Sequence record: ON529852.1
DNA: 64,000 bases
Reading direction: 5' to 3' (one strand)
Below are positions 26,200 to 62,184 of the stretch, piece after piece. Every line of letters starts with the position of its first letter. Within the stretch, counting starts at the first letter, position 1. Below the pieces are notes generated by a model. That model was not told where the DNA came from. It saw only the letters and a program-made list of their open reading frames with translations, and did no database searches. The translations under genes and the position numbers were made by a program.

Positions 26200-26427
26200 T
26201 TAGGCCGCCGCCGCCATTTCCTCCGCGACCGCCGCCGAGATGCGGGCGAAGTCGGCGGCGGTGGTGTTGGCTTCGAGGTCCGCCATGGAGCGGATTTGAC
26301 GGCCCGCCATGTTGGCCTTGCGGAAAGCGGCGTTCAGGACGTAGTGGAAACGGGTGGCGAGTTCACCGGCTTGTTGCGAGGCCAGCATGGTGGCGAGAAC
26401 TTCGTAGTGCGATTGAACCGTTTTCAT
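26200..26427 (-). CDS. hypothetical protein, 75 aa
   Basis: Last cassette of the CtrA-promoter array. Confidence 0.75.
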   Translation of the reverse strand: MKTVQSHYEVLATMLASQQAGELATRFHYVLNAAFRKANMAGRQIRSMADLEANTTAADFARISAAVAEEMAAAA

Positions 26428-26629
26428 TTTCGTCAGTCCCTGTGCGGGGGGCCAATCCCTCCGTCCATGTGAAGACTATGCCCTGAAAGTCTTAACAAGA
26501 AGTTAACGGGCAAAAGAAAATGCGCGCCGCGCGAAGAAAAACGCACGTCGCCGGGAAGGCCGTTTTTAGCGCCATACAGGGCAGGGGAGGGCTCGCCGCT
26601 GTCAGGCGACGGGCGAGCCCCTGAAGCCC

Positions 26630-26875
26630 CTAGCTGGCCGCTCCCTCGGCCTCGCAACGCAGGTCGTCGGAGGCTTGCGCCGCGTTCAGGCAATCTTGCG
26701 CGCTCATGCCGTAGTCGTCCACATAGGCGTGAACCTCGCCGCCCTCGATCACATATTGAACGAGGGAGTAGGATTCGGCGGGCGGCTTGGGCAGGGCGAA
26801 GCCGTGACCGTCGAAGGCGACAACGGCGAGGGTGGCGACGGCGAACAGGGCGGCGGGCAGGATCAGGCGGGGCAT
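26630..26875 (-). CDS. secreted/membrane hypothetical protein, 81 aa
   Basis: N-terminal hydrophobic helix; two Cys. Confidence 0.75.
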   Translation of the reverse strand: MPRLILPAALFAVATLAVVAFDGHGFALPKPPAESYSLVQYVIEGGEVHAYVDDYGMSAQDCLNAAQASDDLRCEAEGAAS

Positions 26876-26899
26876 GGGCGGGATTCCTTTGGGCAGGGG

Positions 26900-27058
26900 T
26901 CAGGCGTGAAGGTCGAGGGCGGCGGCGTCCGCCTTCGCCAGCGCGTCCGCCTTGGCGTAGGCGACGGCGGCGAGGGTCAGCGTGTCCAGCCGGGCGGCGA
27001 TCTGGCGGCGGGCGGCGCGGCGCTGGCGGCGTTGCAGGGGGGTCAGGTCGCGGAGCAT
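26900..27058 (-). CDS. hypothetical protein, 52 aa
   Basis: RBS plus ATG 27058. Confidence 0.6.
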   Translation of the reverse strand: MLRDLTPLQRRQRRAARRQIAARLDTLTLAAVAYAKADALAKADAAALDLHA

Positions 27059-27108
27059 GGGGAACCTTGGCAGGAGGGCGGGAGGCGGGCTTGCGCCCGC
27101 CCCTTGGG

Positions 27109-27273
27109 TTAGGCCAGAAGGGCGGCGATGCGGGCGGCGGCGCCTTGCGGGCGGGCTTGCTCGCCGGTCCACTCGGCGCGGACGTGCGCGGGGGCGGGGG
27201 CGGCGGCTTCCATGGCGGGCTTGCGCTGGCCGAAGGTGGCGGTGCGGGTCAGGGGCGAGGCGTTCTTGAACAT
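27109..27273 (-). CDS. hypothetical protein, 54 aa
   Basis: CtrA promoter plus GGAGA RBS; not in the ORF track. Confidence 0.7.
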   Translation of the reverse strand: MFKNASPLTRTATFGQRKPAMEAAAPAPAHVRAEWTGEQARPQGAAARIAALLA

Positions 27274-27399
27274 GGGTCGTTCTCCGTTGTTGAACCCACT
27301 ATAGGGGCGCAGAACTTAACAGCAAGTTAAAATCGTCAGGCCCTTGAATCTTTTTTGAGGGCAGGGCGGGGGAGGCGCTGGGCCTCCCCTTGGGGCGGG

Positions 27400-27564
27400 T
27401 CAGCCGCGCGCGCCGCGCAGCCAGCCATCCGTCCAGTTCGCGGCGTCCGCCGTGTCGAGGGGATGCGGGCAGGCGTCGAAGGGCAGGCCCGAATTGTAAG
27501 CGTCACGGCCAGCCTTGTAAGCGGAGGTCAGGGGCATGAGAGGCGTTCCCGTCGGCGCTGTCAT
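27400..27564 (-). CDS. Rmf/CrpP-like small protein, 54 aa
   Basis: AYKAGRDAYNSG.PFDACPH.......NWTDGW matches the ribosome modulation factor pattern; own CtrA promoter. Confidence 0.65.
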   Translation of the reverse strand: MTAPTGTPLMPLTSAYKAGRDAYNSGLPFDACPHPLDTADAANWTDGWLRGARG

Positions 27565-27787
27565 GGGGCCAATCCCCTAGCGGCGACATAGGCAGATTAG
27601 CCGTCCAACCGTTAACAAGAAGTTAACGCCGCGAAAGTTTTTCAGGGCAGGATGGTTAACGGATTCGCCCCCCGGCGTTAACCATAGGGCCAGGCGCGGC
27701 GCGCGGGCGCGTTAACCTTAACGCCGCATTAGGGTTAACGGCGGCGTGTGCGCCTAGCCCCGCCCGGCGCGCCGGGCGGGGCGGGCG

Positions 27788-27988
27788 TCAATGCACCTCG
27801 CGGCCTAGCAGCTTGCCGCGCGGGCCGATTGTGACCTTCTGGGCCGCGCCATACATGGTGACGTTAACAACCGTTTTGTGGCCCGACTGGCGCACGGTCA
27901 GGGCCTCGATGGCGCCGCCGCCGACGATGCGGCGCAGGGCGTCGCGTTGCGCGGGGTTCAGCTTGGCGATCTCTTGGGCGGTGGTCAT
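27788..27988 (-). CDS. hypothetical protein, 66 aa
   Basis: CtrA promoter plus RBS. Confidence 0.75.
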   Translation of the reverse strand: MTTAQEIAKLNPAQRDALRRIVGGGAIEALTVRQSGHKTVVNVTMYGAAQKVTIGPRGKLLGREVH

Positions 27989-28104
27989 GGCGGCTCTCTC
28001 CGTTGATGCTCCTGTATCGCATCGGTTCCTTAACAACAAGTTAACGGCGGAAAGTTTTTCGCTGGCGCGGGCCGCCCGGCGCGCCGGGCGGCGGGTTCAG
28101 CGTA

Positions 28105-28347
28105 TCAGAACAAATCCAACCCCTTGTGTGAGGGGTCAGCGCCGATCTCGGCGCAATAGCCGCGCCACGCCGGGCTATGGCCGCGATCCCCGTTCAAGGC
28201 GTCTTTCAGGTCGTCGTAACGGTCGCAAAGGGTTTGACTACGCAGCGAGTTCAGGCCTTGGGCGCCGCGCGCGACATGGGCGGAAATGCTTTGGCGGGTG
28301 CGGTGCAGGGCCTTGATGATCTTGGTTTCGGTCTGGGCGGCGGTCAT
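28105..28347 (-). CDS. hypothetical protein, 80 aa
   Basis: CtrA promoter plus RBS. Confidence 0.75.
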   Translation of the reverse strand: MTAAQTETKIIKALHRTRQSISAHVARGAQGLNSLRSQTLCDRYDDLKDALNGDRGHSPAWRGYCAEIGADPSHKGLDLF

Positions 28348-28509
28348 GGCGTTTCCCTTGGGGTTGCCGTTGCTGTCCCTCCCTAATAGCCGCGATTCGT
28401 TAACAAGAGGTTAACGGCGCGAAGAATCTCCGGGCGGGCTTGGCGTTAACCTTAACAGGCGCGCCGGGGCCTGAAAAACCCCGCCCGGCGCGCCGGGCGG
28501 GGTCTGGCG

Positions 28510-28788
28510 TCAGGCGACCTGACGAATCAGCCGCCGTTGCCGGAACAGCCGATAAGTGAAGAACGCCCGGCCCATGTCCGATTCGGTGTCAGCCGCGAAG
28601 TGGTCGGCGAACGCCAGCGGCATCGACGTATAGTCGGCGCCGTCGTCGCCCGTCCGGGCGATCAGCGAGCCTTCCGCGTCGCAAAGGTAAAGGTCGAAGT
28701 CGCGACCGTCGTTCGGCGCGACCGCCGCGACCAGACGGCAGGCGGCGCAGTCATGAGCGAAGCGGGCGGTTTTGAAGAAAGAGGCCAT
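28510..28788 (-). CDS. hypothetical protein, 92 aa
   Basis: CtrA promoter plus RBS. Confidence 0.75.
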   Translation of the reverse strand: MASFFKTARFAHDCAACRLVAAVAPNDGRDFDLYLCDAEGSLIARTGDDGADYTSMPLAFADHFAADTESDMGRAFFTYRLFRQRRLIRQVA

Positions 28789-28905
28789 GGCGTGTCCCTT
28801 GGGGTTGCCGTTGATGTCATCCCCTTATCCCACCCAACCCTTAACAAAACGTTAACGGCGGAAAGAAAAATCGCCCGCCCGGTTCGCCGGGCGGGCGGGG
28901 TCGTC

Positions 28906-29817
28906 TTAGGCGGCGAGGGCGACGTCTAGGGCCTCGCCAGCGGGCTCCGCCTCGCCCGCGTCGGCGCTGGCGTTCAGGATGAATTCGGCGGCGGCTTGGG
29001 CCTTGGTGCAAGCCTGAATGAAGGCCTTGGGGTTGGAGCGGATGCGCTTGGCCCATGCGCCGATATAGGCGGCGTGGTCGTCGCGCTCGACGCTGGCGAA
29101 GCCTTGCGAGGCGCAGACAAACGCCGCCGTCAGTTCCGCGACCAGTTCCTCAAAGGCGTAAGCGTCGTCGCCGAACTCGCGACCAAAGACGCGGTTGAGG
29201 CGATGCGCCGCGCCGGTCCAGTGGCCGATTTCGTGGAAGGCCGTCGAATAAAAGCCATCGACCGAAACGAAGTCGGCGAAGGCCGGAAGCTGGATGCGAT
29301 CGACGCTCGGCGCGTAAAAGGCTTTCGTGCCGCCGTAGCGGATTTCGGCCCCGGTGGCGAGCATGAGGGCGTCAGCGGCGGCGATGCGCTCCAGTTCCGG
29401 GCGCGCCGCGACGGGCTCGCCTTGGGGCAGTTCGATTCCGTCGCACTGGGCGATGTTGAACACGGTGTAAGCCTTGGCGAAGAACGACGCCGTTTCCTCG
29501 CCCGTGGCCTTGTCTTTGCGGGTCGTCCGCGACCAGAAAAAGACCTGCGTTCCCTTCTCGCCCGCCCGGACGGAACCGCCCTTGGCCTTGGCTTGCTTGA
29601 ACGTCAGCCAAACGGGTTCAGCATAGCCGCGCGCTTCCTGTTCCATCCACAGCCAGAACACGTTGGCCCCGCGATAGGCGCGGCCTTCGATGTTGTGCGG
29701 CATGGCGATAGCGCCGGGGCGCGAGGTCCAAGGCTTGGCCCAAGGGCGCACGCCCGATTCCAGCTTGCCCGCGATGGTCGCGGCGATCTTGTCGAAAACG
29801 TCGTTTGCTTGAGCCAT
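28906..29817 (-). CDS. ardC: ArdC-family antirestriction / ssDNA-binding protein with zincin-like domain
   Basis: PWAKPW, YRGAN, WLTFKQA...GEKGT, VFNIAQ, HEIGHWTG, YAFEELVAE. Confidence 0.9.
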   Translation of the reverse strand: MAQANDVFDKIAATIAGKLESGVRPWAKPWTSRPGAIAMPHNIEGRAYRGANVFWLWMEQEARGYAEPVWLTFKQAKAKGGSVRAGEKGTQVFFWSRTTRKDKATGEETASFFAKAYTVFNIAQCDGIELPQGEPVAARPELERIAAADALMLATGAEIRYGGTKAFYAPSVDRIQLPAFADFVSVDGFYSTAFHEIGHWTGAAHRLNRVFGREFGDDAYAFEELVAELTAAFVCASQGFASVERDDHAAYIGAWAKRIRSNPKAFIQACTKAQAAAEFILNASADAGEAEPAGEALDVALAA

Positions 29818-29909
29818 GTCAGGCGCTCCCGTTGAGGTGATAGGGCCAAACTACCGTCCAACCCTTAACAAGAAGTTAACGGCAGAAATCTTTTCCGGCA
29901 AGCCCTATT

Positions 29910-30004
29910 TTAACTTTTTGTTAAGACTTGCGCCCTATGGTGTATCTTGGGGAGGGATCGGCTGGGCCGTTAACCATGTTCGTTAGGGCGGCGTTAACCT
30001 TAAC
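29910..30004 (+). repeat. copy 1 of a ~95-bp repeat: + strand CtrA promoter without a gene
   Basis: 55 bp (29950-30004) identical to 30908-30962. Confidence 0.85.
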
Positions 30005-30104
30005 GGAATCGAAAGCCGCGTTAAGGTTAACGAATCAGGCGGCGGCGTTAACCATGGGCCAGGGCCTCCGAAGGGCGGGCGGGGCCGAAGCCCCGCCGCG
30101 CCGG

Positions 30105-30467
30105 TCAGAACGGCTTGACGATTCGATAGGCGTCGTTCGCCCGCGCTTGGGCTCCGCCGTAGTCGCAAGCGAGGAAGTTTTCAGCCGCGCGGGCTTGCAG
30201 CATGAGCGACTCTTGCAGGGGCGTCGCCGGGGCGTTGTCCGGGCGCGCTTCGATCAGCTTGGCGATCACAACCCGAACCATGCCGGTCGCGTCGTTGCGG
30301 GTCAGTTGGCGCGTGTCGCGCATCCACTGAATCGCCTTTTCGTGAACGTCGTGAACCATGGTCAGGCACTCGCGGTCAAAGGCCGATGCGCCGCGCGCGG
30401 CGGCGGTGATGTCGCCCAGCGTTTGCAGCATGAAGCCGATGGTCCGGGTTTTGCGTTCGTTCCGCAT
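30105..30467 (-). CDS. hypothetical protein, 120 aa
   Basis: RBS; preceded by a palindrome and T13 tract rather than a CtrA box. Confidence 0.75.
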   Translation of the reverse strand: MRNERKTRTIGFMLQTLGDITAAARGASAFDRECLTMVHDVHEKAIQWMRDTRQLTRNDATGMVRVVIAKLIEARPDNAPATPLQESLMLQARAAENFLACDYGGAQARANDAYRIVKPF

Positions 30468-30569
30468 CGCGGTGATTCCTTGGCAGGGGCGGCAAGAGCG
30501 CCGCCCGACTGTTAGAGCACGCGGAACATTCCTTTACAAGAGCGTTCCGCGCTTTTTTTTTTTTTGAAG

Positions 30570-30755
30570 TCAGCGGCGGGCCGGGCGCGACCAGCGGGGT
30601 TCCGTCCCGCGCGGCGGCATCGGCGCCGAATCGTCGTCGTCGTGGTCGCGCCACTTGCGCGAGCGGGAGGCTTCGCGGCTGGCGAAACGGTCCTGCTTGT
30701 CAAGCGTGTTGCGGGTGTCGTCGAGGGCGGCGTTACGGCGGAAGGTGCGGGCCAT
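30570..30755 (-). CDS. hypothetical charged protein, 61 aa
   Basis: CtrA promoter at 30822 plus RBS. Confidence 0.65.
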   Translation of the reverse strand: MARTFRRNAALDDTRNTLDKQDRFASREASRSRKWRDHDDDDSAPMPPRGTEPRWSRPARR

Positions 30756-30867
30756 GTCTGGACTCCAAGGGTTCGGGCGGCGGCCAATCCGTCGCCCTGT
30801 TGACACCCTAGAGTCGAAGGTCTTAACAAAACGTTAAGAACGGGTCCAGTCGAAAATCTTTTCGCTG

Positions 30868-30962
30868 TTAACCCTTTGTTAAGACTTCCACCCTATGCTG
30901 TCTCTTAGGGAGGGATCGGCTGGGCCGTTAACCATGTTCGTTAGGGCGGCGTTAACCTTAAC
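30868..30962 (+). repeat. copy 2 of the ~95-bp + strand CtrA-promoter repeat
   Basis: Matches 29910-30004. Confidence 0.85.
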
Positions 30963-31070
30963 AAAACCTTAAGCCCGTTAACCTGAATCGTTAAGGTTAA
31001 CGGATTCGCCCGTCGCGTTAACCATGATTCGCAACGCACAAAGAAAGGGGGCTGTCAAGCCCCCTCCCTC

Positions 31071-31313
31071 TTAATCGTGGCGGAAGATCGTGCGGGGCTT
31101 GGCGGCCAGCCGCATGGCGTGGCGGCGCTCGATTCGCTTGCCCTGATAGAAGTAGGTGCAGCGACCGAAACGGCCCTTGGGGCCGCGATGGATGCGCGTG
31201 ACCAGTTCGCCGCCGTTCACTTGCGCGACCAGAACGGTCAGGCGGGCGGTGCGGGCCTCGACCAGCGAGGCGGTCAGGGCGTTGCGGGCGTTCAGTTCGC
31301 GAGCGGTTTGCAT
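31071..31313 (-). CDS. hypothetical basic protein, 80 aa
   Basis: CtrA promoter plus GGAGA RBS. Confidence 0.75.
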   Translation of the reverse strand: MQTARELNARNALTASLVEARTARLTVLVAQVNGGELVTRIHRGPKGRFGRCTYFYQGKRIERRHAMRLAAKPRTIFRHD

Positions 31314-31590
31314 CGGGCGTCTCCGTGAGGGCCAATCCCTCTTGACCTGACCAATATGGGGCCAAGAAGTTAACAAGAGGTTAACAGCGCGAGAAAAGTT
31401 CGCTGAAAACGACTCGCAAGTTTTCGGCCCTCGGCGCCGGGCGCGGAGGGGGCGCGGGCCTCGACCGGGCCGGGGCGGCGACCGGGCGGGCGCGGGCCTC
31501 GACCGGGCCGGGGCGACGGGCGCGGCCAGCCCGCCCCCCGGCGTGGGTCGGACGATCTGGGCGGGCCTCCCGTGGGCGGAAACGGCCCGA

Positions 31591-31738
31591 CGTCAAGTTC
31601 GCCCGCGTGGGTGAAAACGGCCCGACGTCAAGTTCGCCCGTGGGCGGAAATGAAGCCGCGTCAAGTCAAGTCCGCGAGCGAAAGCGAAGCGGCGTCAGGT
31701 CAAGCCCGAAGGCGAAAGCGACGCCGCGTCAGGTCAGG
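31591..31738 (+). repeat. CGTCA(A/G)GT array, locus 1 (5 units, 33-35 bp period)
   Basis: Cores at 31591, 31626, 31659, 31693, 31727. Confidence 0.8.
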
Positions 31739-32240
31739 ACAGGGCGACGCCGCGCACCATCAAGGTCGCCGGCTCGCCTGTGACGCCCTCGACGAAGGCC
31801 CCGTCGAAGTCCTGGACCTTGACCACATGGTCAGGCGGGAAGCCGAACGATTGCGTTTCGCCGTCCAGTCGGATGCAGTCCGGCGTCTCCTGTTCGAGGC
31901 GGACCACGGTGAACCACGAATGTTCCAGCACCATATCCGCGCCGTCCGGGTCGGCGATGTCGTCGTCTTGCAGGTCCAGTTGGTCGCCGGGGTGCAGGTC
32001 GCGCACGGCGATTTCGCTCGGGATGCTCGGCCCGTAATAGACCACGGCGCCGCCCTCGATCTTGCCGCCGGTCCAGCCGCGCGCGCGGGCGAAAGCGTAA
32101 AGGTCCACCGAGTCGGCGAAGACCGGGGACAGCAGGTCGGCCTCTTTCGGCCCCTTGCCGTCCGTGGGGTCGAACAGGAAGGTTCCCAGCGCGCCGGTGA
32201 CGGCGGTGCATTGGATGGCGAGGTGAGCGATCTTGGTCAT
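31734..32240 (-). CDS. hypothetical protein, 168 aa
   Basis: CtrA promoter plus RBS. Confidence 0.8.
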   Translation of the reverse strand: MTKIAHLAIQCTAVTGALGTFLFDPTDGKGPKEADLLSPVFADSVDLYAFARARGWTGGKIEGGAVVYYGPSIPSEIAVRDLHPGDQLDLQDDDIADPDGADMVLEHSWFTVVRLEQETPDCIRLDGETQSFGFPPDHVVKVQDFDGAFVEGVTGEPATLMVRGVALS

Positions 32241-32374
32241 CGGGCGTCTCCGGTTTCGATCCTGCTACCCTAGCGGACAGAAGTTAACAAGAGGTTAACG
32301 CCGGGGCGATTTTTCGAGCGCGCTCGGGGCGAGCGGGCGTTAACCTTAACGGCCGTTAACGAAGCCAGGCCCGC

Positions 32375-32704
32375 CTAGTGCGCGTGGAAGTCCACGCGAC
32401 CGGCGGGCGAGACGTCGAAGTCCCAGACGTTGAAGCGGGCGGCTTCGGCGGCCTCCGCCTCTTCAGCCGCGCGGGCGGCGGCGTAGGCCTCGCCCTCGGC
32501 CTTGTGGGCCGCTTCGGCCTCGGCCAGTTCCGCGCACTCGCGGGCGTAGGCCTCGGGGCAGCCGTAGCCCGTGGGGCGGTCGGGGCGCGCGTCGAGCCAA
32601 GCCCGCGCGGCGGCGACCGTGACGCCCGCCATGACCGGGCGGACGCCGTAGTCGTTGCGGTGCAGGGCGTAGTAGAGGTCGAGGGTTTCCTGATCGGCGG
32701 TCAT
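32375..32704 (-). CDS. hypothetical protein, 109 aa
   Basis: CtrA promoter plus RBS. Confidence 0.75.
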   Translation of the reverse strand: MTADQETLDLYYALHRNDYGVRPVMAGVTVAAARAWLDARPDRPTGYGCPEAYARECAELAEAEAAHKAEGEAYAAARAAEEAEAAEAARFNVWDFDVSPAGRVDFHAH

Positions 32705-32792
32705 CACGTCTCTCCGGCGGGCCAGTCCCGCCACGTCTTCACCCTAGCGGACAGGTATTAACAAGAGGTTAACGCCCGCGCGAAAATCGGGC

Positions 32793-32899
32793 AGGGTCCC
32801 CGGCGATGAATTGGGCAGGGTCCCCGGTCGAAAAATCAGGCAGGGTCCCCGGCGATGAATTGGGCAGGGTCCCCGGTCGAAAAATCAGACAGGGTCCCC
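32793..32899 (+). repeat. AGGGTCCCC array, locus 1 (5 units, 24/25 bp period)
   Basis: Cores at 32793, 32817, 32842, 32866, 32891. Confidence 0.9.
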
Positions 32900-32925
32900 G
32901 TTAACCTTAACGGGCGGGGGCCGCG

Positions 32926-33045
32926 CTAGGCTCCGCGTCCCTTGCGGGAGTAGGAGCCTTTGCCCTTGCGGGCCTTGACCACGCGGACCCGGTAAGCCGG
33001 GGTGGCGAGGGCGGCGGCGGCGGGGTTGCGTTTCGGGGCGGCCAT
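32926..33045 (-). CDS. arfA: ArfA-like alternative ribosome-rescue factor, 39 aa
   Basis: MAAPKRNPAAAALATPAYRVRVVKARKGKGSYSRKGRGA carries the L..P.(F/Y)R.RV.K.+KGKGSY.RK signature; own CtrA promoter and RBS. Confidence 0.8.
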   Translation of the reverse strand: MAAPKRNPAAAALATPAYRVRVVKARKGKGSYSRKGRGA

Positions 33046-33098
33046 GGGTGTCTCCGTGGTTGATGGAAACACCCTAGCCGACAGAAGTTAACAAGAGG

Positions 33099-33545
33099 TT
33101 AAGCGTCGGGATATTGCGCCTGAAGCTTCGCCAGCGTGGCCCGGTCCTCGGCTTCGGCGGCGCGGCGGGCCTCGTCGCGGCGCTTCGCGGCGGCGGTGCG
33201 CTTGGCGTCGCGGGCGGCGGTTTCAGGGGCCAGCCACGCCGGTTCAGCGCCCTCGGCGGCCGGGGCCAGGTATGCCAAGGGGAAAGACACCTCGGCCCAG
33301 TCCTGATAGCCGTAGCTTCCCGAAACGTAGAATTTGACGTCCACGGTTTCAGGCTTGTCGCCGCGCGCCTCGTCCAGTTCCCAGCTTTCGAGATAGCCAT
33401 AGACGACAGTGTCCAGACGTTGGTCCTTGGGCTTCACAGGCTCATCCAGCCGGAAGATGTAAATCGCGCGGGCCAAGTGCTCCAGCGCCTCGTTAAGGGC
33501 GTCGCGCTCGGTCACAAAAGCCTTGAGACGGTCAGGGGTCAGCAT
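33099..33545 (-). CDS. hypothetical protein, 148 aa
   Basis: RBS; stop lies in the next CtrA box. Confidence 0.8.
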   Translation of the reverse strand: MLTPDRLKAFVTERDALNEALEHLARAIYIFRLDEPVKPKDQRLDTVVYGYLESWELDEARGDKPETVDVKFYVSGSYGYQDWAEVSFPLAYLAPAAEGAEPAWLAPETAARDAKRTAAAKRRDEARRAAEAEDRATLAKLQAQYPDA

Positions 33546-54824: not shown

Positions 54825-54880
54825 GGGGCGTCTCCCGTGTTTCGATGGTCTGACCCTACAGGACAGAAGTTAACAAGAGG

Positions 54881-55417
54881 TTAATCGGCGAAGATTTCCG
54901 ACAGGGGCGGGATGATTTTGTAGGGGATCGCCTCGACGCTGGCCTTGTTGAAGGCGGCCAGATAGGTCTTGTAGTAGCGGGCGCGTTTGCCGTCCGTCAT
55001 CAGCTTCCACTTGGTCTCGTGGCCCGGAATCCACTGCTGATTGTCAGCGGCCTCAATCGCGGCGATGAACTGGGCGACGGTCATCCCGTCGTGGTCCTGC
55101 CGGGTCGGGGAAATGCTGTTCAGTTCGTGCCAGGGGTGGTCGTCGGCGTAGTGGGCGCCGCCGCCATCGCTGGACCATGAGGCCGATTCCATCCCCAGCA
55201 GGACGGGCAGGAAGTCGTCGCCGTCGCCGGTCAACAGGGAACAGACCTTGACCGCCTGTTCCATCGTCATCAGGCCGTCCAGAATGAACTCCAGATGCTC
55301 CTTATAGTTGGAAGCGTCGCGATACATATAGGACAGGCGCGTGTTCTGCCCCGGATGGCCCGCCCAGACGGACGGGTTGATCTGATGGGGCAGGGCGGCG
55401 GGGGTCTGGGCGGTCAT
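54881..55417 (-). CDS. hypothetical phage protein, 178 aa
   Basis: CtrA promoter plus RBS; YMYRDASNYK...DDHPWHEL motif. Confidence 0.8.
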   Translation of the reverse strand: MTAQTPAALPHQINPSVWAGHPGQNTRLSYMYRDASNYKEHLEFILDGLMTMEQAVKVCSLLTGDGDDFLPVLLGMESASWSSDGGGAHYADDHPWHELNSISPTRQDHDGMTVAQFIAAIEAADNQQWIPGHETKWKLMTDGKRARYYKTYLAAFNKASVEAIPYKIIPPLSEIFAD

Positions 55418-55479
55418 GGCGTCTCCTCCATGGGTGATCTCGATTGAGACCACCCTACAGGCAAGAAGTTAACAAGAGG

Positions 55480-55962
55480 TTAATCGGCGGCGGGAACTTT
55501 GAGGTCCACGCCGAAGACGTGAACCAGTTCGCCGCTCGGCTTGCGCACGATCACGCCCAGCCACTTCTCCTCGACAAAATAGCCCGTCACCTCGGCGTCG
55601 CCGATTCGGTTGACGGCGACGCGCACGGTCGCGCCGACCTGGGGCGGTGAATCCTCGCCGGACCACAGGACAGCGCCTTCGATGCCCGGCGGAAGCAGGC
55701 GGCCGTCTTCCCAGCGCGCCAGTTCATAGGCGGGCAAGTGCGGACGCCACAGGGGCGCATAGACATCCATCAGCCACGACGGGCCGTAGGTGTTGCGGAT
55801 CGCGCGCAGGAGATTGCCCGCGTCCTCCTGCGTGTCGCCGCCGGTCGCCCACAGAATGGTCAGATGCTCTTTCCAACCGCCTTCGACCTTGGCGTATTTG
55901 TCGGCGAAGTTCAGCAGGGCGGCGGACGCCTCGGGCGTCAGGGCGGGGTAGGTGTCAGGCAT
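55480..55962 (-). CDS. hypothetical protein, 160 aa
   Basis: CtrA promoter plus RBS; stop in a CtrA box. Confidence 0.8.
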   Translation of the reverse strand: MPDTYPALTPEASAALLNFADKYAKVEGGWKEHLTILWATGGDTQEDAGNLLRAIRNTYGPSWLMDVYAPLWRPHLPAYELARWEDGRLLPPGIEGAVLWSGEDSPPQVGATVRVAVNRIGDAEVTGYFVEEKWLGVIVRKPSGELVHVFGVDLKVPAAD

Positions 55963-56136
55963 GGGGCGTCTCCCTTGTTCGATGATTCCTTGTAGCGGCG
56001 ATCTCTTAACAAGAGGTTAACGCCGTGACAAGAGCGCGCGGGCGTTAACCTTAACGCGACGTTAAGGTTAACGCCCGGCGAAAGGGAAAGACGCGCCGCC
56101 GGGGGAGACAACCCGGCGGCGCGGCAGGCGGCGGCC

Positions 56137-56697
56137 TCAGACGTCGAGGTCGCCGTATTGCGTCCCGCACTGGACGATTTCGCCGGTGGCGTCATCCCAG
56201 TGGATGCGGTTCAGGCGCAGCTTGTTGCCGGTGCGGGCGTGGGTCCATTCCACCTGACAGGTAATCATGTCGTCGAAGACCGCCGAGGGCGCGCCGTATT
56301 GCGTCCAGTCCACGCCGCCCCGGTCGTCAACCTGCTGCTTGGCGTCGGACAGGATGCGGGCCAGAACCTCGGGCATCAGGCGGCCGGGCGCCTTCTTGAG
56401 GCCGTAGGCCCCGCGTCCGTTGTTCGCCATATTGCTGAAGTTCGTGAAGTCCTGCGTGTAGTTCTCGACCTCGATCGACCCCGGCTGGGGCAGGTCAAAC
56501 ATCAGGTCCGACAGCATGTCGCCAACCGTATAGGTCTCGGTGGCGGCGTCCAGCTTGTCGGCCAGTTCGGCGCCCTCGTCGCCCGGCTGGACGTAGAGTT
56601 CGGCGCCGTCAGCGCGGCGCGCCAGGACGCCGCCCATCGAATCACGCCACGCCTTGAACGCGCCGTCGTCGCTCTCCCAGGTCGGAGCCTTGCTCAT
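56137..56697 (-). CDS. hypothetical protein, 186 aa
   Basis: ATGA coupling. Confidence 0.8.
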   Translation of the reverse strand: MSKAPTWESDDGAFKAWRDSMGGVLARRADGAELYVQPGDEGAELADKLDAATETYTVGDMLSDLMFDLPQPGSIEVENYTQDFTNFSNMANNGRGAYGLKKAPGRLMPEVLARILSDAKQQVDDRGGVDWTQYGAPSAVFDDMITCQVEWTHARTGNKLRLNRIHWDDATGEIVQCGTQYGDLDV

Positions 56698-57107
56698 GCC
56701 TCGGCCTCCTCTTCGACTTCGGCGTAGGCGCTGGGGATGCGCTGGCCGGTGTGGTCGCAGAACAGGTCCGCGTTCTCATAGTTGATTTGGGCGCCGTCGA
56801 TCCGCCAGCCGGTCGAACAATCGTTCAGGTGGTCATAGCAGACCTGGGCGAATTGTTGCTGCACCGCGTCGAACGACAGGGCGGCGCCGTCGCGGGTGAC
56901 GAAGTAGAGCGGATAGCCGCCGAGGTCCGTGAAAGGTCCGGCGCGCAGCGCGGCCTTGACCTGCTGAAGGGCCTTGATCGGGCGGGTGTCCGAGACGAGC
57001 AGCGGTTGGCGATAGCCGCAGCGCAGGGGCGGGCGCTTCGACCAGTCAGGGTCGCGCGTGTCGAAGAGGTCGCCGTGGCTGACGAAAAGGTGGGCGGGCA
57101 ATGTCAT
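56694..57107 (-). CDS. hypothetical phage protein, 137 aa
   Basis: CtrA promoter plus RBS; GGYPLYFVT.DG..L...INYEN.DL.CDH...IPSAY motif. Confidence 0.8.
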   Translation of the reverse strand: MTLPAHLFVSHGDLFDTRDPDWSKRPPLRCGYRQPLLVSDTRPIKALQQVKAALRAGPFTDLGGYPLYFVTRDGAALSFDAVQQQFAQVCYDHLNDCSTGWRIDGAQINYENADLFCDHTGQRIPSAYAEVEEEAEA

Positions 57108-57274
57108 GGGGTCTCCTCCCGTTGCTGACCCTCCCTGTATCGCACGAAGTTCTTAACAACAAGTTAACGCCGCGATTTATTTTCAGCGGGGGAGGCGGCG
57201 GCGTTAACCTTAACGCGCCGTTAAGGTTAACGCGAGCGGGTCGCAGGAAGAGAGAGGGCCGTAGCCCTCTCCCC

Positions 57275-57784
57275 TTATTGCTGCTCGACATGAGCGCGGT
57301 AATAGGCGACGCCTTCGGCCTCAGGCATCAGGTTCAGGATCACCGCCTGAGGCTGCTTCTCATGGATGACCTTGACGTGGGCGGCGAGCGGGTGCGGCGC
57401 CGTCAAGTCCATCTGGAAGATGCCGGGCGAGCCCGGTTTGGTGAAGAGGACTTTTTTCTTGATGGTGCGGCGATAGGCCTTGAGCCATTCGTGGGCGGTA
57501 ATCTCCTCGCCGATGAGCAAAGACAGGTCCATGTCGATCAGGCCCAGCCCTTCGGACAGGTCGAACTGGGGATAGGTCGCCTTGATGCGCGCCTCCAAGG
57601 CGGCGAGGTCGTCATAGGTGAATCGGCCGACCGGGTGGATGCGGTCTTCGCCGCCCTGGCCGGTGTTGGAGGCCTCGGCGAACTTCTCGCCATCGACATA
57701 GACGGTGGCGGTGTAGGCGGTCGTCTCCTCCGACAGGGACGGCATGGTCTTGAGGTTCTTGAGGGTGATGACGGGTTTCTGCAT
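57275..57784 (-). CDS. hypothetical phage protein, 169 aa
   Basis: CtrA promoter plus RBS; LKNLK....SEET.AYTA.VY.DG...A..SNTGQGG motif. Confidence 0.8.
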   Translation of the reverse strand: MQKPVITLKNLKTMPSLSEETTAYTATVYVDGEKFAEASNTGQGGEDRIHPVGRFTYDDLAALEARIKATYPQFDLSEGLGLIDMDLSLLIGEEITAHEWLKAYRRTIKKKVLFTKPGSPGIFQMDLTAPHPLAAHVKVIHEKQPQAVILNLMPEAEGVAYYRAHVEQQ

Positions 57785-57922
57785 GGCGGTCTCCTGATCC
57801 GGCGATGTCTCACCCTAGCCGCAAGGTCTTAACAAATCGTTAACGCCGGTCAGCCTCGGCGCTGCGTTAAGGTTAACGCGGTCGGGTCGCAAAAAGGCGC
57901 CCGGTCGAAGCCGGGCGCTGGT

Positions 57923-58063
57923 TCAGGCGGCGGTGCGGTAGCGGGTGTGGCCCCGGTCCCAGGCGTAGGCCTCGACCGATCCGCTCGGGTGGGGGTTGTT
58001 CCACCACTTGACGCCCCGGTGCGCGGCGGCGTAGCCCGCGCCTTCGATCTGGGCGGCGTCCAT
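57923..58063 (-). CDS. Rmf/CrpP-like small protein, 46 aa
   Basis: GAGYAAAHRG...NPHPSGS.EAYAWDRGH; TGATG coupling. Confidence 0.55.
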   Translation of the reverse strand: MDAAQIEGAGYAAAHRGVKWWNNPHPSGSVEAYAWDRGHTRYRTAA

Positions 58064-58317
58064 CAGGCGCCGATCCGGTGGGCCGGGCAGAAGCCCGACA
58101 CGACCTTGACGCGACCGCGCTTGAAGCCGGGGCGCAGGGCGCGCGCCGAGCGTTCGGCGTCGGCGGTCTTCATGTGGCCGCAGGCGCAGGATGCGCCGGG
58201 GTCGCGGGCCTTGGCCTCGCGCACCTTGTCGGCGCCGGCCTGGGTGCCGAGCCAGCCGCAAAAGGGCTCGCCGCCGACCGTGATGTGAGCGGGTTGGGTG
58301 TTAGTCATCGTCGCCAT
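58063..58317 (-). CDS. hypothetical Cys-containing protein, 84 aa
   Basis: ORF track; GAGGAGG RBS. Confidence 0.7.
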   Translation of the reverse strand: MATMTNTQPAHITVGGEPFCGWLGTQAGADKVREAKARDPGASCACGHMKTADAERSARALRPGFKRGRVKVVSGFCPAHRIGA

Positions 58318-58837
58318 CCTCCTCGTCCTGGGGCATGTCTTCGGCGTCGGTCAGGCCGGTGACGGTCCACCAGCCGAGGCCCTGGGCGTCGCCCGAGGTG
58401 TAGCCTTCACGGACCATCGTCGCCATCTGTTCCAGCGCGTCGGCCACGTCCTCGTCGGTCATGGCGTCGTGACCGTTGAAGGTGAAGGTCGGCTTGACCG
58501 TCACCGGGGCGGGGGTCGATTCGCTGTTGATCTCTTCATGATGCGTCACGCTCTCGGCGACGATCTTAGCGAGGTCGTCGCCGACCAGCATCCAGTCTTC
58601 GGCGTCGCCGTCCGGGTCATAGACGACGAAGGCGCCGGGGTATTGCGCGACGCGGGCGCGCCAGCCGATGCGCACCTCGGCGTGTTTCTCGGCGATCCAG
58701 TCTTCGCCCATTTGGGTCGCGCCCGCGTAGGCGCCGACATGGAAATTGGTCGTCATCAGTTCGCTGCGAGTGGCGACGCGCAGGCCCCACACGTCGAGGG
58801 CGGTCTGGGCTTGCGTCAGGGTCATGGCCTCGGGCAT
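58301..58837 (-). CDS. hypothetical protein, 178 aa
   Basis: GGAGA RBS. Confidence 0.8.
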   Translation of the reverse strand: MPEAMTLTQAQTALDVWGLRVATRSELMTTNFHVGAYAGATQMGEDWIAEKHAEVRIGWRARVAQYPGAFVVYDPDGDAEDWMLVGDDLAKIVAESVTHHEEINSESTPAPVTVKPTFTFNGHDAMTDEDVADALEQMATMVREGYTSGDAQGLGWWTVTGLTDAEDMPQDEEDGDDD

Positions 58838-58847
58838 CGGGGTCTCC

Positions 58848-59045
58848 TTAGAGATGGATCGCGGCGTCGAACGCCTGGGATTGCAGTTTCTTGGCGGCTT
58901 CGGCCTCGGCGGGGTAGAGCCGGGCCAGGCCGTCAAAGCGTTCTTTCTGATGCGAGCGCTCGCCCTCGGCGGCGGTCATGTGCATGACCTCGCCCCACAG
59001 GTGGGCCATTTCGAGGATCAGGACAGAGCGGCGGGAAGCGTTCAT
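58848..59045 (-). CDS. hypothetical protein, 65 aa
   Basis: CtrA promoter plus RBS. Confidence 0.75.
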   Translation of the reverse strand: MNASRRSVLILEMAHLWGEVMHMTAAEGERSHQKERFDGLARLYPAEAEAAKKLQSQAFDAAIHL

Positions 59046-59097
59046 GGCGGTCTCCTTGTTGACCTCGCCACCCTAGCAGCGAGGTCTTAACAAGAGG

Positions 59098-59583
59098 TTA
59101 ACAGCGGCGAAGCATTTCACGCATCAGGGCTTCCTCGTTGCGGGCGATGTCCAGCGCGGCGCGGTCGTGGCCCTGCTCATACGCCAGCTTGGCCTGCTGT
59201 CGGCAGATGTCCTGGCGCTTGCGGATGTCCGCCTCGGACAGGGTGCGGAACAGGGCGTCGGCCTCCTGATCGACCTTGGCGGTCCATTTCTGCTGCGATT
59301 CGTCCTCGCTTTGCAGATGGGCCGGGAAGTAGAGTTCAGCGACCTCTTGCGCAAAGAAGGTCCCGTCGTTGCCGAGCGCCTGACAGATGGCCTCGACTTC
59401 GCCGGGGGCGATCTCCTCGCAGAGCGTGGTCTTGTAGTCGCCCAGGCCGTCGCCCTCTTCGATGAAGCGCGCGATTTGAGTGAGGTCCATGGCGTCCACC
59501 TTGATCCGGTCCTGAGGATCGCGGGCGAGGTGCAGGACCGTCACGGTGACGGTGGTGCGGATGAAGGTCGGCGTGTCGGTCAT
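59098..59583 (-). CDS. hypothetical protein, 161 aa
   Basis: CtrA promoter plus RBS; stop in a CtrA box. Confidence 0.8.
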   Translation of the reverse strand: MTDTPTFIRTTVTVTVLHLARDPQDRIKVDAMDLTQIARFIEEGDGLGDYKTTLCEEIAPGEVEAICQALGNDGTFFAQEVAELYFPAHLQSEDESQQKWTAKVDQEADALFRTLSEADIRKRQDICRQQAKLAYEQGHDRAALDIARNEEALMREMLRRC

Positions 59584-59741
59584 GGGGGTCTCCCGCGTTT
59601 CGTTGCTCAGGTTCTAGCACCGATTCGTTAACAAGAGGTTAACAAGGTTCGCGGCGGCGCCGGGCGTTAACCTTAATGCGCTGTTAAGGTTAACGGCGGG
59701 CGGGCGAAAGGGACGCCCCGGCGCGAGGCCGGGGCGCGGGG

Positions 59742-59954
59742 TCAGTAGGGCCGGTCGAGGATGCGCCAGCCGGGCTTGTCGTCGGGGCCGGTCTCCGGCT
59801 CGACCTGATAGACGGTCCAGCGCTGGCCCATCGGCGATTGCAGGGCGGCGGTGGTGTCCGGGTAGGTCTTTTCGGTCACGTCGCGGTCGTCCTTGGCGAG
59901 CCAGTCGCCGACCCACGGTTCGCCGGTGCGGTGCAGCAGGTAAACGGCCCCCAT
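59742..59954 (-). CDS. hypothetical protein, 70 aa
   Basis: TGATG coupling. Confidence 0.7.
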   Translation of the reverse strand: MGAVYLLHRTGEPWVGDWLAKDDRDVTEKTYPDTTAALQSPMGQRWTVYQVEPETGPDDKPGWRILDRPY

Positions 59955-60166
59955 CAGACGACCGCCAGCAGGCGCGAGTGCGAGGTCTCGACCGAATAGG
60001 CCTCGATCTGGAGCCCCGGCAGGGCGGCGCGCAGTTCGTCGCGCACAGCGAGGGCTTCGGCGGGGTCTTCGGTGGTCAGGCGCAGTTCGCCGATCCGGCG
60101 GGCTGGGGCGCCCTCGGCGGCGCGGCGCGACAGTTCCAGCCGCAGGTCGTAGGGGGTGTCGGTCAT
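59954..60166 (-). CDS. hypothetical protein, 70 aa
   Basis: CtrA promoter plus RBS. Confidence 0.75.
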   Translation of the reverse strand: MTDTPYDLRLELSRRAAEGAPARRIGELRLTTEDPAEALAVRDELRAALPGLQIEAYSVETSHSRLLAVV

Positions 60167-60219
60167 CAGTGTCTCCCGTGATTGAGCGTCCGGTATAGCC
60201 GGAAGGTCTTAACAAATCG

Positions 60220-60591
60220 TTAACGGCTGGGTGCGCTTAGGCGGGCGATGATTTCGTCGTTCGTCATCGTGTCCATCAGGTCCTGGACCTGCCGGGCCTT
60301 GTCATCCTCGACCGCCTGGGCCGCCGCCTGGGCGCGGCGATGCTCGGCCAGCGCCGCCTTGCCGGCCTCGGTGGTCTCCGGGTCGATGGTCATGTAAAGG
60401 CTGACCTCGCGGCCCTGCCGATCCACGAAGGTCAGGCTTCCAGACGGCCGCACCTTGACGGTGAAGTGATGCTTGACCAGCCGCTCGGCGGTTTCCTGAC
60501 CGAAGTCGCCGCCGAAACTGCCGCCCGCCGCCTTGACGGTGTTGTCGCTCTTGAGCCGGGTGTGATAGCCGACGTTCTTGTAGGGGGGCAT
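60220..60591 (-). CDS. hypothetical protein, 123 aa
   Basis: AAGGAG RBS; stop in a CtrA box. Confidence 0.75.
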   Translation of the reverse strand: MPPYKNVGYHTRLKSDNTVKAAGGSFGGDFGQETAERLVKHHFTVKVRPSGSLTFVDRQGREVSLYMTIDPETTEAGKAALAEHRRAQAAAQAVEDDKARQVQDLMDTMTNDEIIARLSAPSR

Positions 60592-60601
60592 GGGGCGCTC
60601 C

Positions 60602-60940
60602 TTAGAAGGGAATGTCGTCGTCGAACGACGGGGGCGGGGCGTAGGTCTGGGCGGCGCGGGCGCGGCGGGCCGCGTCCATCTCGGCGCGCTCCTCGTCCGT
60701 CGCGCTCCAATACTCGTCGTCTTCCGGGTGCGCGCCGGGCTCGCCCTGATAATGCGGGTTGCGGACCCAAGCGTCGAACGGGTGCAACAGCCACTCACGC
60801 TCGGGGACCTCGTAGCCTTCCGAACGGGCGAAGCCCGACAGGGCCAGGCTCATGAACTCGCCTTGGCTCAGCGACTCCATCGCCAGAGCGTCTTCCTTTT
60901 CGCGGCGGGCCTCTTCGGCCATTTCGATAACGTCACGCAT
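60602..60940 (-). CDS. hypothetical phage protein, 112 aa
   Basis: CtrA promoter plus RBS; WLLHPFDAWVRNPHYQG.PG.HPEDD motif. Confidence 0.8.
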   Translation of the reverse strand: MRDVIEMAEEARREKEDALAMESLSQGEFMSLALSGFARSEGYEVPEREWLLHPFDAWVRNPHYQGEPGAHPEDDEYWSATDEERAEMDAARRARAAQTYAPPPSFDDDIPF

Positions 60941-61120
60941 CGGCGTGTCTCCTTGTGAGCCACCCTTATGCCATCCAGAAGTTAACAACAAGTTAACGCC
61001 GACGCTTTTCTGGATTTTTCTTCGGGCGGCGGCTCCGGGCGTTAACCTTAACAGCCTGTTAAGGTTAACGCGACCCGGTCGCAGGTGAAATCCGGTGTCC
61101 CAGGGTGGGACACCGGCCTT

Positions 61121-61189
61121 TCAAAAGGTGAGCAGGATGACCAGCAGGGCCAGAAAGAGGCGGGAGGCTCCGGCCAGCTTGTCGATCAA
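61121..61189 (-). CDS. possible hydrophobic peptide, 22 aa
   Basis: TTGA overlap; RLFLALLVILLTF. Confidence 0.35.
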   Translation of the reverse strand: MIDKLAGASRLFLALLVILLTF

Positions 61190-61785
61190 GAGCGGTCGGC
61201 CAGCGCGCGACGGTTCAGCGCCGCCAGCAGGTCGTCCACCAGAAGCTTGTGAAGGCGACGCTTTTCAGGATCGCCCTCGTCCCGCAGCGGTACGTCCACC
61301 AGAGGCGTGGCCTCGGCATCGTAGGCGAAGATGATTTCGGTCACGCCTTGCGCCTCTTGGGCGTAGTAGGCGGGCTGGATGAAGGCGACAGGACGACCGT
61401 CGCGAGTGACTTCGCCGCTCAGGGCGGCATCGAAGGCGCCGGCTATGTAGGTCTTGATGGCGTCGCGGTCCTTACCGCTCACCTTCAAATCGAAGCCTGA
61501 CGTCAGCGAGGGGGTTACGGTCACGACGTGTTCCGTCCAGCCGTCATAGCCGCCGCTGGCGTCCATGTGGTGATAGGATGTCAGGAAGACCAGCTTGGAC
61601 GGCGTCGAGCGGTCCAGATCAAGCGTGGTCCCCGCATCGAAGCCCGATCCGCTGGGCATGGCTTCCTTGACCATCGCCGTGAGCCTGTCGGTGTGGCGGT
61701 CCAGCCATTCCGTGTTGTCGGTGGCGATGCAGGTCAGGCGCGCTTGCACCAGCGTCGCCAGAGCGACATAGAGAGGACGGATCAT
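61186..61785 (-). CDS. hypothetical phage protein, 199 aa
   Basis: CtrA promoter plus RBS; PSGSGFDAG...YHHMD..G.YDGWTEH.V.V.PSL motif. Confidence 0.8.
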   Translation of the reverse strand: MIRPLYVALATLVQARLTCIATDNTEWLDRHTDRLTAMVKEAMPSGSGFDAGTTLDLDRSTPSKLVFLTSYHHMDASGGYDGWTEHVVTVTPSLTSGFDLKVSGKDRDAIKTYIAGAFDAALSGEVTRDGRPVAFIQPAYYAQEAQGVTEIIFAYDAEATPLVDVPLRDEGDPEKRRLHKLLVDDLLAALNRRALADRS

Positions 61786-61938
61786 CAGGGTCTCCTTTGT
61801 GTGTTCCGAGGCTGCAATCTACCCGACAAGGTCTTAACAAAAAGTTAACAGCAGCGCAATCGCTTTTCTTCGCGGCGTTAACCTCTTGTTAACTTCTTCG
61901 TGGGATAAGGGTCAGGTCAACAACACAGGAGATCGCCG

Positions 61939-62184
61939 ATGGGCGAAGTCATCCCGCACCGCGTCTGGCATCACAAGCCGTCAGGCCGCACCGCCAGCAT
62001 CTTCGGCGCCGTCCCTTGGGTCTCGGCGGCGCAAGAGTCCGAATGGGAACGGGTCACGGTCGGCTGGACCGTCCGCCACCCGGACGGCACGACCGGGGTC
62101 GGTCGCTTCGCCTTCGAGACGAAGGACGAGGCGCAGGCTTGGGTCGATAAGAATCCCAACTTCCCCGGCATGAGCCAAGGCTAG
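61939..62184 (+). CDS. hypothetical protein, 81 aa (only + strand cassette)
   Basis: + strand CtrA box at 61878-61892, CAGGAG RBS, GCAA-loop hairpin after the stop. Confidence 0.85.
   Translation: MGEVIPHRVWHHKPSGRTASIFGAVPWVSAAQESEWERVTVGWTVRHPDGTTGVGRFAFETKDEAQAWVDKNPNFPGMSQG

Follow-up and report, generated by a model that had tools for sequence, protein, structure and literature searches.

The stretch of DNA analysed here (the window, 64,000 nucleotides in length) corresponds by sequence identity to the final 64 kb of sequence record ON529852.1, the genome of Brevundimonas phage vB_BpoS-Kabachok; window positions equal record positions minus 292,285. Kabachok, a member of the Dolichocephalovirinae (the phiCbK-like phages) with a genome of 356,285 bp, was isolated on Brevundimonas pondensis LVF1. 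Our subject is a 36-kb array of small genes, making up ~10% of this genome, in which the genes stand behind repeated promoter units built around the sequence TTAA-N7-TTAA, a site for the host cell-cycle regulator CtrA.

According to the record annotation, all genes of the array but one lie on the minus strand. Read as transcribed, the genes for the small and the large terminase (record 4025-372) are followed by ~2.2 kb of repeat-rich non-coding DNA, then by the array (62,570 down to 26,200) and then by peptidase and portal genes; the array likewise lies between the portal/peptidase and large terminase genes in phages Papperlapapp, Marchewka, Gurke and Domovoi. In the parts of the rest of the genome that we inspected, genes are organised in long, tightly packed operons. 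Most cassettes in the array contain a single gene (35 cassettes), with two genes in 13, three in two and four in one; the median cassette spacing is 662 bp and the median protein length 109 aa. Together with a lone plus-strand cassette, this gives 52 promoters preceding 72 small, unrelated genes. No paralogs were found among the 71 proteins encoded by the minus-strand cassettes, so that only the regulatory DNA is repeated and tandem gene duplication can be ruled out as the origin of the repeats. The principal features are as follows.

26200..62184, minus strand: array of 51 minus-strand cassettes with 71 small genes (annotation of ON529852.1)
26492..61848, minus strand: 51 promoter-type (P) boxes, 15 nt each, followed by a -10 element, a leader of ~20 nt, GGAG and ATG
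P boxes, minus strand, low coordinates (1): 26492, 27316, 27612, 28030, 28400, 28841, 29865, 30823, 31370, 32284, 32758, 33088, 34078
P boxes, minus strand, low coordinates (2): 34729, 35345, 35792, 36454, 37330, 37891, 38360, 39055, 39394, 39914, 40561, 41058, 41820
P boxes, minus strand, low coordinates (3): 42563, 42994, 43465, 44285, 46158, 46828, 47666, 48559, 49020, 49788, 50639, 51517
P boxes, minus strand, low coordinates (4): 52147, 53106, 54190, 54870, 55469, 56006, 57153, 57829, 59087, 59628, 60209, 60982, 61834
61878-61892, plus strand: P box of the lone plus-strand cassette (plus-strand reading TTAACCTCTTGTTAA), divergent from the promoter at 61834, with an 81-aa gene at 61939-62184
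Record 372-3095: large terminase gene, directly past the window end (annotation)

CtrA boxes and promoter architecture

TTAA-N7-TTAA occurs 70 times in the window, compared with 0.08 occurrences expected from 100 dinucleotide shuffles; all copies fall within 26492-62529 and none (0/70) lies inside an annotated coding sequence. The tetranucleotide TTAA is similarly distributed, with 230 of its 244 occurrences in the array confined to the intergenic 24% and only six in window positions 1-26199. In record positions 1-100000 the N7 box was found once, at record 63, right beside the array on the other side of the record junction, so that 70 boxes in the 36-kb array stand against one in 126 kb of other Kabachok sequence. 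A preliminary description of this DNA, made from the sequence alone, had reported an array of repeated TTAA-N7-TTAA cassettes and named a motif count as a means of checking it; that count confirms the array, with 51 promoters on the minus strand and one on the plus strand.

Two classes of box, the P boxes and all others, can be told apart when the sequence is read in gene orientation. Fifty-one P boxes lie 40-74 nt (mode 42-44) 5′ of an annotated ATG, and one further P box faces the plus strand, where the gene behind it has a G+C content at third codon positions of 0.84, typical for real genes of the region. The non-P boxes arise incidentally from upstream 12-mers, for the most part where two of these stand 17 bp apart, or form parts of two orphan plus-strand promoter units (described below). 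The 12-mer, GTTAAGGTTAAC or its complement, is restricted to the array within the window, and one or two copies stand 31-164 nt 5′ of the P box at 32 of the 51 promoters; an upstream element had been claimed for every unit, and such an element does exist, at these 32 promoters rather than at all of them.

27711..62536, both readings: upstream (U) elements, 47 copies of GTTAAGGTTAAC or GTTAACCTTAAC; pairs at 17-bp distance give rise to most of the 19 N7 boxes beyond the 51 minus-strand P boxes
62239-62267 and 62440-62570, minus strand: head-of-array clusters of CtrA half-sites and full sites (12-mers, TTAACCAT and four N7 boxes)
Record 55-150: further cluster of CtrA sites, adjoining the large terminase stop codon

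In a wastewater metatranscriptome, contig word depth over the 12-mer clusters at 62180-62363 and 60892-61075 was hundreds-fold above that over the flanking genes, and the same contigs run on from the clusters into unrelated sequence; CtrA-site repeats therefore appear to be common to many other environmental sequences.

The promoter consensus is GcG-TTAACcTCTTGTTAAc-N4-T-N4-GCTAgggt, with a -10 element that resembles GCTAGGGT. The TA of the -10 element follows the box after 11 nt in 36 of the 52 promoters, after 12 nt in five and after 13 nt in eight; setting the -10 hexamer at -12 to -7 places the box at -38 to -24. GGAG is found at -16 to -5 relative to the start codon in 44/51 cases and the distance from the -10 T to the ATG is mostly 30-33 nt, leaving a leader of only ~20 nt. 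The order of elements given in the preliminary description (box, -10, GGAG, ATG, small genes) is thus correct once read on the minus strand. As for a -35 hexamer, nothing TTGACA-like was found at the proper distance from the -10 element in the Kabachok promoters, and TTGTTA within the box was ruled out as a candidate, as it lies 12 nt from the -10 element compared with 17 nt for the TTGACA of phage Gurke. Since the activator site stands in place of the -35 element, the layout is that of an activator-dependent promoter.

Ten promoters carry a GANTC site (CGAATC), the target of the cell-cycle methyltransferase CcrM, directly after the box and before the -10 element, which hints at a methylation- or GcrA-linked promoter sub-class.

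Examples of GANTC promoters (box coordinates): 28400, 34078, 34729, 39055, 39394, 42563, 48559, 53106, 59628

CtrA control and the homologous promoters of phiCbK

The phiCbK terminal-repeat promoters of gp004, 005, 008, 009, 012, 018, 019 and 020 share this module architecture and several are near-identical in sequence (for example gTAACCTTTTGTTAActtctggcctCTAGGGT; pattern TTAACC-TTTTG-TTAA, ~11 nt, CTAGGGT). A BLAST search with one Kabachok promoter recovered the module only from Dolichocephalovirinae and, in Caulobacter phages, within annotated terminal repeats. The gp005 and gp018 promoters of phiCbK bind CtrA~P, with binding abolished by mutation of the sites, and they are active in uninfected Caulobacter, where expression collapses in the ctrA401ts background (Mascolo et al., 2022, PMC9437464). 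Both CtrA and the motif that it recognises are conserved throughout the Alphaproteobacteria, with the CtrA of Brevundimonas subvibrioides 87% identical to that of Caulobacter (PMC9437464), and in Caulobacter the majority of CtrA-activated promoters carry one such site at -35 (Rijal et al., 2024, PMC11264516). Because the Kabachok promoters are built on the same module as those of gp005 and gp018, we strongly infer that they are activated by CtrA. Control by CtrA, as put forward in the preliminary description, is thus well supported through homology to CtrA-dependent promoters and the position of the box over the -35 region.

Might TTAAC-N6-TTAAC instead be read by some factor other than CtrA, encoded by the phage or not, for instance a phage winged-helix protein or one delivered with the virion, with the likeness to a CtrA site incidental? 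The spacer and flanks are conserved beyond what CtrA alone would lead one to expect, and the Domovoi orthologue of 60220-60591 is annotated as winged helix-turn-helix. The phiCbK homologues, however, need no infection to be active in Caulobacter, require ctrA and are bound by purified CtrA~P, and the annotation of the 164 kb of genome inspected includes neither a sigma factor nor an RNA polymerase, all of which makes such a factor very improbable.

In phiCbK, this genome position is occupied by a 10.3-kb direct terminal repeat with its left end within the large terminase gene, while in phage Colossus the terminal repeat begins just downstream of that gene (Gill et al., 2012). The terminase motif LGEVLWDYYDL found around the phiCbK left end is conserved in Kabachok and does not locate the Kabachok end; a search for repeat edges through read depth over 58500-64000 returned only low-depth fragments from metagenomic and RNA-virome contigs. 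By position and promoter content, the array would be the enlarged counterpart of the phiCbK terminal-repeat region and may itself form part of a terminal repeat.

Gene content and hairpins

No Pfam family was assigned to 67 of the 73 proteins searched, no match to a defence system was obtained with PADLOC, no integrase family was detected among the 73 proteins (Pfam, PHROG) and no Rfam family was found in the window. A winged-helix regulator at 60220-60591 was rejected as a candidate, for want of any Pfam match at E < 0.01. Three genes are recognisable.

28906..29817, minus strand: ArdC-type anti-restriction gene, annotated ‘DNA primase’ (Pfam ArdcN 1e-36, MPTase-PolyVal 2e-42; PHROG 7245 ‘anti-restriction protein’ 5e-84)
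32926..33045, minus strand: ArfA-like alternative ribosome-rescue factor gene (record annotation; one array protein matches Pfam ArfA, 6e-10)
27400-27537, minus strand: weak RMF-like (ribosome modulation factor) gene (E 1.8e-5, below the Pfam cutoff)

The product of 28906-29817 combines an ArdC N-terminal domain with a zincin metallopeptidase domain; its label in Papperlapapp is ‘DNA primase TraC’. This gene content fits, thinly, an accessory set for host takeover, and the ~70 small array proteins of unknown function probably act on the host; what speaks for the ‘arsenal’ of the preliminary description is these three genes, set against 67 proteins outside any Pfam family. From the host-type -10 elements and the position beside the terminase gene we infer that the array is early, and the anti-restriction gene speaks for expression shortly after the DNA has entered.

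A GC-rich hairpin of 18 nt recurs just past three stop codons, exactly where it had been noticed before.

27761, 28073 and 28482 (27761..28499), minus strand: recurring hairpin CGCCCGGCGCGCCGGGCG

In folding predictions, a GC-rich hairpin of -12 kcal/mol or stronger follows the stop codon in 38/41 intergenic regions of at least 70 nt, and ~12 of these hairpins have a T-rich tail. Eleven open reading frames (ORFs) end at or a few nt from the next box, ten of them through the TAA of the box’s first half-site. As the upstream ORF runs up to or into the next promoter at these 11 junctions, there is no terminator between them and read-through is likely.

ORF stops at the next box: 33099, 38371, 40572, 46848, 49031, 51528, 54201, 54881, 55480, 59098, 60220

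Recombination at the repeats

Kabachok was aligned with Papperlapapp and Domovoi (of the same species as Kabachok) and with Marchewka, and the ends of all gaps of at least 60 nt were collected. Gene order is collinear among the four genomes. The array contains 46 distinct breakpoint ends, of which 22 are intergenic, 19 lie no more than 20 nt from an ORF end and five fall inside genes, so that 41/46 are at cassette edges, compared with 32.7% expected from position (binomial p = 2.6e-15). For ten distinct whole-cassette indels, 11-147 nt of sequence align at both sides of the junction, and this shared sequence is a 12-mer region or a promoter. Gene replacements start and end within 2-5 nt of start and stop codons; at 31734-32240 the flanks are ~96% identical, and the aligned sequence is homologous again no more than 2 nt from the stop and start codons.

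35426-35835, minus strand: whole-cassette indel, absent from Papperlapapp and Domovoi, with the 12-mers at 35390 and 35835 as its bounds and an overlap of 37 nt
54211-54833: whole-cassette indel between the P boxes at 54190 and 54870, with a 59-nt overlap
56061: 12-mer at which relatives carry an extra inserted cassette
27790-28479, 39105-39381 and 57250-57860: similar indels
31734..32240, minus strand: ORF-replacement site (the case just described), with a 168-aa gene here and an unrelated 159-aa gene in Papperlapapp

The comparison of breakpoints among relatives, proposed in the preliminary description as a check, thus places most of them at the repeats and ORF edges. Its recombinational platform survives the refutation set for it there, a fully conserved gene order with no breakpoints at the repeats: cassettes are gained, lost and replaced, while their order, being collinear, is not shuffled. 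It might be argued that the repeats are merely conserved regulatory signals and that illegitimate recombination strikes anywhere, with the edge bias produced by selection against gene breakage. Selection alone does predict intergenic enrichment, and both the full collinearity of the four genomes and the five breakpoint ends inside genes fit that explanation. Against it stand the ten indels, whose shared sequence at both junctions is a signature of repeat recombination, the precision with which replacements end near start and stop codons, and the exchange of entire promoters with the gene retained (see the next section); we consider it unlikely. The overlaps at the junctions, like the promoter swaps, speak for a genuine contribution of recombination between repeats.

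Two promoter types in sister phages

Gurke, a more distant phage of the same host strain, carries the same array, likewise located between portal and terminase genes, with 14 N7 boxes and essentially no P-type promoters. Instead, 47 or 48 of its 53 upstream regions read ctgaaaaagaggTTGACAcc-N17-TAGAAG, a consensus sigma-70/sigma-73 promoter with an A-tract, and the 12-mer or TTAACCAT is found further upstream of these TTGACA promoters. Among orthologous promoter-proximal pairs, 23 have a CtrA-type promoter in Kabachok and a TTGACA-type promoter in Gurke, and one is CtrA-type in both; the distance from the -10 element to the ATG is equal in the two types. Across 21 Kabachok/Gurke pairs, the opening 30 nt of the coding sequence are 68% identical, positions -1 to -20 (mostly the common ribosome site) are 47% identical, and identity at -21 to -80 is 19-25%, the random level. 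In the lone pair that is CtrA-type in both phages, the upstream regions are 60-80% identical and the coding sequences ~45%. As orthologous genes differ in promoter type, promoters have been exchanged as modules independently of genes, and one promoter type now fills nearly the whole array in each lineage.

A minority promoter of the other type was also seen in both lineages: Gurke has one CtrA-type promoter (TTTACCTCTTGTTAA, upstream of 10429) within its TTGACA-type array, and gp021 of phiCbK, the first gene past the repeat, has a TTGACA-type promoter (upstream of 10598).

These contrasts lead us to propose, tentatively and at somewhat less than even odds, that dependence of the whole early regulon on the host cell cycle is a swappable trait, conferred by a mobile module of ~60 nt that spread by recombination or gene conversion through ~50 cassettes, leaving Kabachok, Papperlapapp, Domovoi and Marchewka CtrA-gated and Gurke constitutive with upstream half-sites. 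If so, this would represent concerted evolution of promoters within a virus and would provide a natural matched pair for establishing what cell-cycle gating buys a phage.

The retention of upstream 12-mers in Gurke despite its CtrA-free -35 regions also bears on whether the ~230 intergenic TTAA half-sites serve chiefly as a sponge that titrates host CtrA~P after replication of the phage DNA, freeing the host origin or blocking division, with the promoters secondary. Such a role would suit the density of sites (70 full boxes plus 230 half-sites in ~9 kb of intergenic DNA) and the gene-less clusters at 62440-62570 and record 55-150. Titration would not, however, need 52 boxes set at one fixed distance from a -10 element and start codon, and the homologous promoters are activated by CtrA; we judge titration as the chief role to be quite improbable.

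Timing of expression

For the homologous phiCbK promoters, the published model is one of ‘lytic deferment’, with expression at the predivisional rather than the swarmer stage (PMC9437464). Applied to Kabachok, it would have the promoters silent in a freshly infected swarmer and firing once CtrA is active in the predivisional cell, as a delayed programme. In agreement with this, firing in early to mid predivisional cells is the rule among host promoters whose CtrA site is at -35, and extra upstream CtrA sites, which lower and delay expression at pilA (PMC11264516), have counterparts at 32/51 promoters here. The chief argument to the contrary is that an ArdC-type anti-restriction gene would do little good if its expression came a cell-cycle stage later than the entry of the DNA. 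In addition, the Gurke orthologues stand behind strong, constitutive-looking TTGACA promoters with A-tracts, typical for immediate-early genes, and 41% of phiCbK genes (a figure for the whole phage, from unsynchronised cultures) peak in expression by 15 min. On balance, we regard a deferred programme in Kabachok as somewhat unlikely.

Proposed mechanism and its weaknesses

The reading that we prefer, to which we assign a probability of roughly 75%, is that the accessory region is transcribed by host RNA polymerase, presumably early, as 52 CtrA-dependent units that recombine at their repeats. Each unit would start with a sigma-73-type -10 element (GCTAgggt) without a -35 hexamer, the latter being replaced by a host CtrA site, TTAAC-N6-TTAAC, at -38 to -24. 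Bound CtrA~P would recruit or activate RNA polymerase, and the 72 genes would be expressed only while the infected cell holds active CtrA. The half-site pairs of the upstream 12-mers probably tune affinity and timing, by analogy with the extra sites at pilA, and the GC-rich hairpins behind most ORFs may limit read-through. With a promoter module of ~60 nt and 12-mers recurring every ~660 bp, recombination could delete, insert or replace single cassettes, and would also have swapped whole promoters, giving the CtrA type in the Kabachok group and the TTGACA type in the Gurke group.

Several observations weigh against this reading. The scan for boxes covered ~46% of the genome. The box spacer (cTCTTG) and the T five nt past the box are conserved beyond the needs of CtrA recognition, which could reflect recent spread by recombination, further contacts with RNA polymerase or a second factor. 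Intergenic enrichment of breakpoints is, as noted above, also predicted by selection against gene-disrupting events. Strict terminators (a hairpin plus at least five T), scanned for in the array half 26200-46199, number 15 compared with 21.6 expected and so show no enrichment; together with the scarcity of T-rich tails and the 11 junctions that have no terminator, this means that the ‘terminator hairpin’ of the preliminary description holds good as a hairpin of the longer gaps and much less as a terminator, and that to call the cassettes ‘self-contained’ was an overstatement. Finally, Gurke has no CtrA boxes at -35 and yet infects the same host strain, and since its orthologues use TTGACA promoters, CtrA gating at -35 would be a lineage-specific choice, dispensable for the basic function of the array.

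Comparison with known systems

The closest precedent is provided by the CtrA-site clusters of phiCbK-like phages (Mascolo et al., 2022, PMC9437464), which belong to the same subfamily, use the same promoter module and are likewise intergenic, placed before small genes of unknown function and strongly skewed in position. The features reported there that recur in Kabachok are boxes in excess of chance, concentration next to the terminus and an intergenic promoter position. The two differ in scale, with 52 promoters in 36 kb here and eight in the 10.3-kb repeat of phiCbK, and in host genus, which is Brevundimonas here; phages of B. pondensis lie outside that study. Gain and loss of sites after rearrangements were noted by those authors (PMC9437464), while the geometry between box and -10 element, the 12-mers, the breakpoints at repeats and the switch to TTGACA in a sister lineage are described here and not in that paper.

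The array also closely resembles the PeSL (promoter-early stem-loop) cassettes known from T4-type phages (Arbiol et al., 2010, PMC2839356; Comeau et al., 2014, PMC4122927), in that many promoter-bearing units flank small ORFs within a hyperplastic, variable region, where close relatives differ by indels and replacements that end in the repeated units. However, PeSL promoters are strong sigma-70 consensus promoters, whereas those of Kabachok have an activator site and no -35 element (Gurke does have the consensus type); furthermore, the Kabachok stem-loops are mostly not canonical terminators, and the phage families are unrelated. At the host promoter pilA (Rijal et al., 2024, PMC11264516), a CtrA site over -35 is similarly joined by further upstream sites, of which pilA has three, but the Kabachok counterparts are 12-mers with half-sites 6 bp apart, located 31-164 nt away and restricted to 32/51 promoters. 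The array is unlike integron cassettes, which are promoterless and depend on an integrase with attC/attI sites: no integrase occurs among the 73 proteins and each Kabachok cassette has its own promoter.

Coliphage T5 carries pre-early host-takeover genes with host-type promoters in a long terminal repeat, its promoters being of the consensus sigma-70 type and its DNA transferred in two steps. Kabachok is like T5 in having small genes with host-type promoters in the terminal region of a large siphovirus, and unlike it in that the T5 promoters follow the sigma-70 consensus. A comparison of phiCbK-like repeats with T5 was drawn by Gill et al. (2012).

Other repeats and orphan promoters

The non-coding DNA between the terminase gene and the array contains ~16 direct copies of GATTTGACGC with a period of ~20 bp (62600-62870). 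This sequence includes the Caulobacter sigma-73 -35 consensus TTGACGS, and the repeats may act as an array of protein-binding sites, as an element of an origin or of packaging, or as a sink for RNA polymerase. Immediately downstream of the terminase gene, ~10 copies of GGGGACCCT are spaced at ~22 bp over 63810-64000 and across the record junction (record 1-20); as the same motif with the same spacing stands upstream of phiCbK gp001 (at about 890-1000), the element is terminus-proximal and conserved in the subfamily. Other repeats, which contain GTGACT, lie at 63100-63340.

A unit of ~130 bp, duplicated within the array, is conserved in Papperlapapp and Marchewka.

29910-30060 and 30868-31030, plus strand: duplicated ~130-bp unit with a P-type promoter, several TTAACCAT and 12-mer sites and no ORF

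These orphan units are unsupported as structured RNAs (z-scores -1.2 and +0.4), and a plus-strand ORF at 30054-30515 was ruled out by codon-position GC. The only strong plus-strand terminator in 26200-46199, a hairpin followed by T13 at 30538-30566, is faced by the plus-strand promoter at 29910, which suggests an antisense RNA of ~600 nt over the gene at 30105-30467, a real gene by codon-position GC that lacks a promoter of its own.

Implications

The earlier observation of a cassette array is confirmed and its interpretation partly supported. The kind of feature is already known from experiment, CtrA-controlled promoters in the terminal regions of phiCbK-like phages having been published in 2022 (PMC9437464); what is new here is the promoter geometry, the exchange of cassettes and promoters at the repeats, and the contrast between CtrA-type and constitutive promoters in sister phages. 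The breakpoint pattern carries the PeSL idea from T4-type myoviruses to an unrelated siphovirus lineage, and the array itself provides a compact catalogue of ~70 small proteins of unknown function, including an ArdC-type protein mislabelled as a primase. Kabachok presents the same device as phiCbK at a much larger scale, enlarged five-fold, and sister phages on one host strain, with orthologous genes behind either promoter type, offer a ready-made comparison, so that the question of why phage genes are tied to the host cell cycle, whether for immediate expression in the swarmer or for lytic deferment, becomes directly testable.

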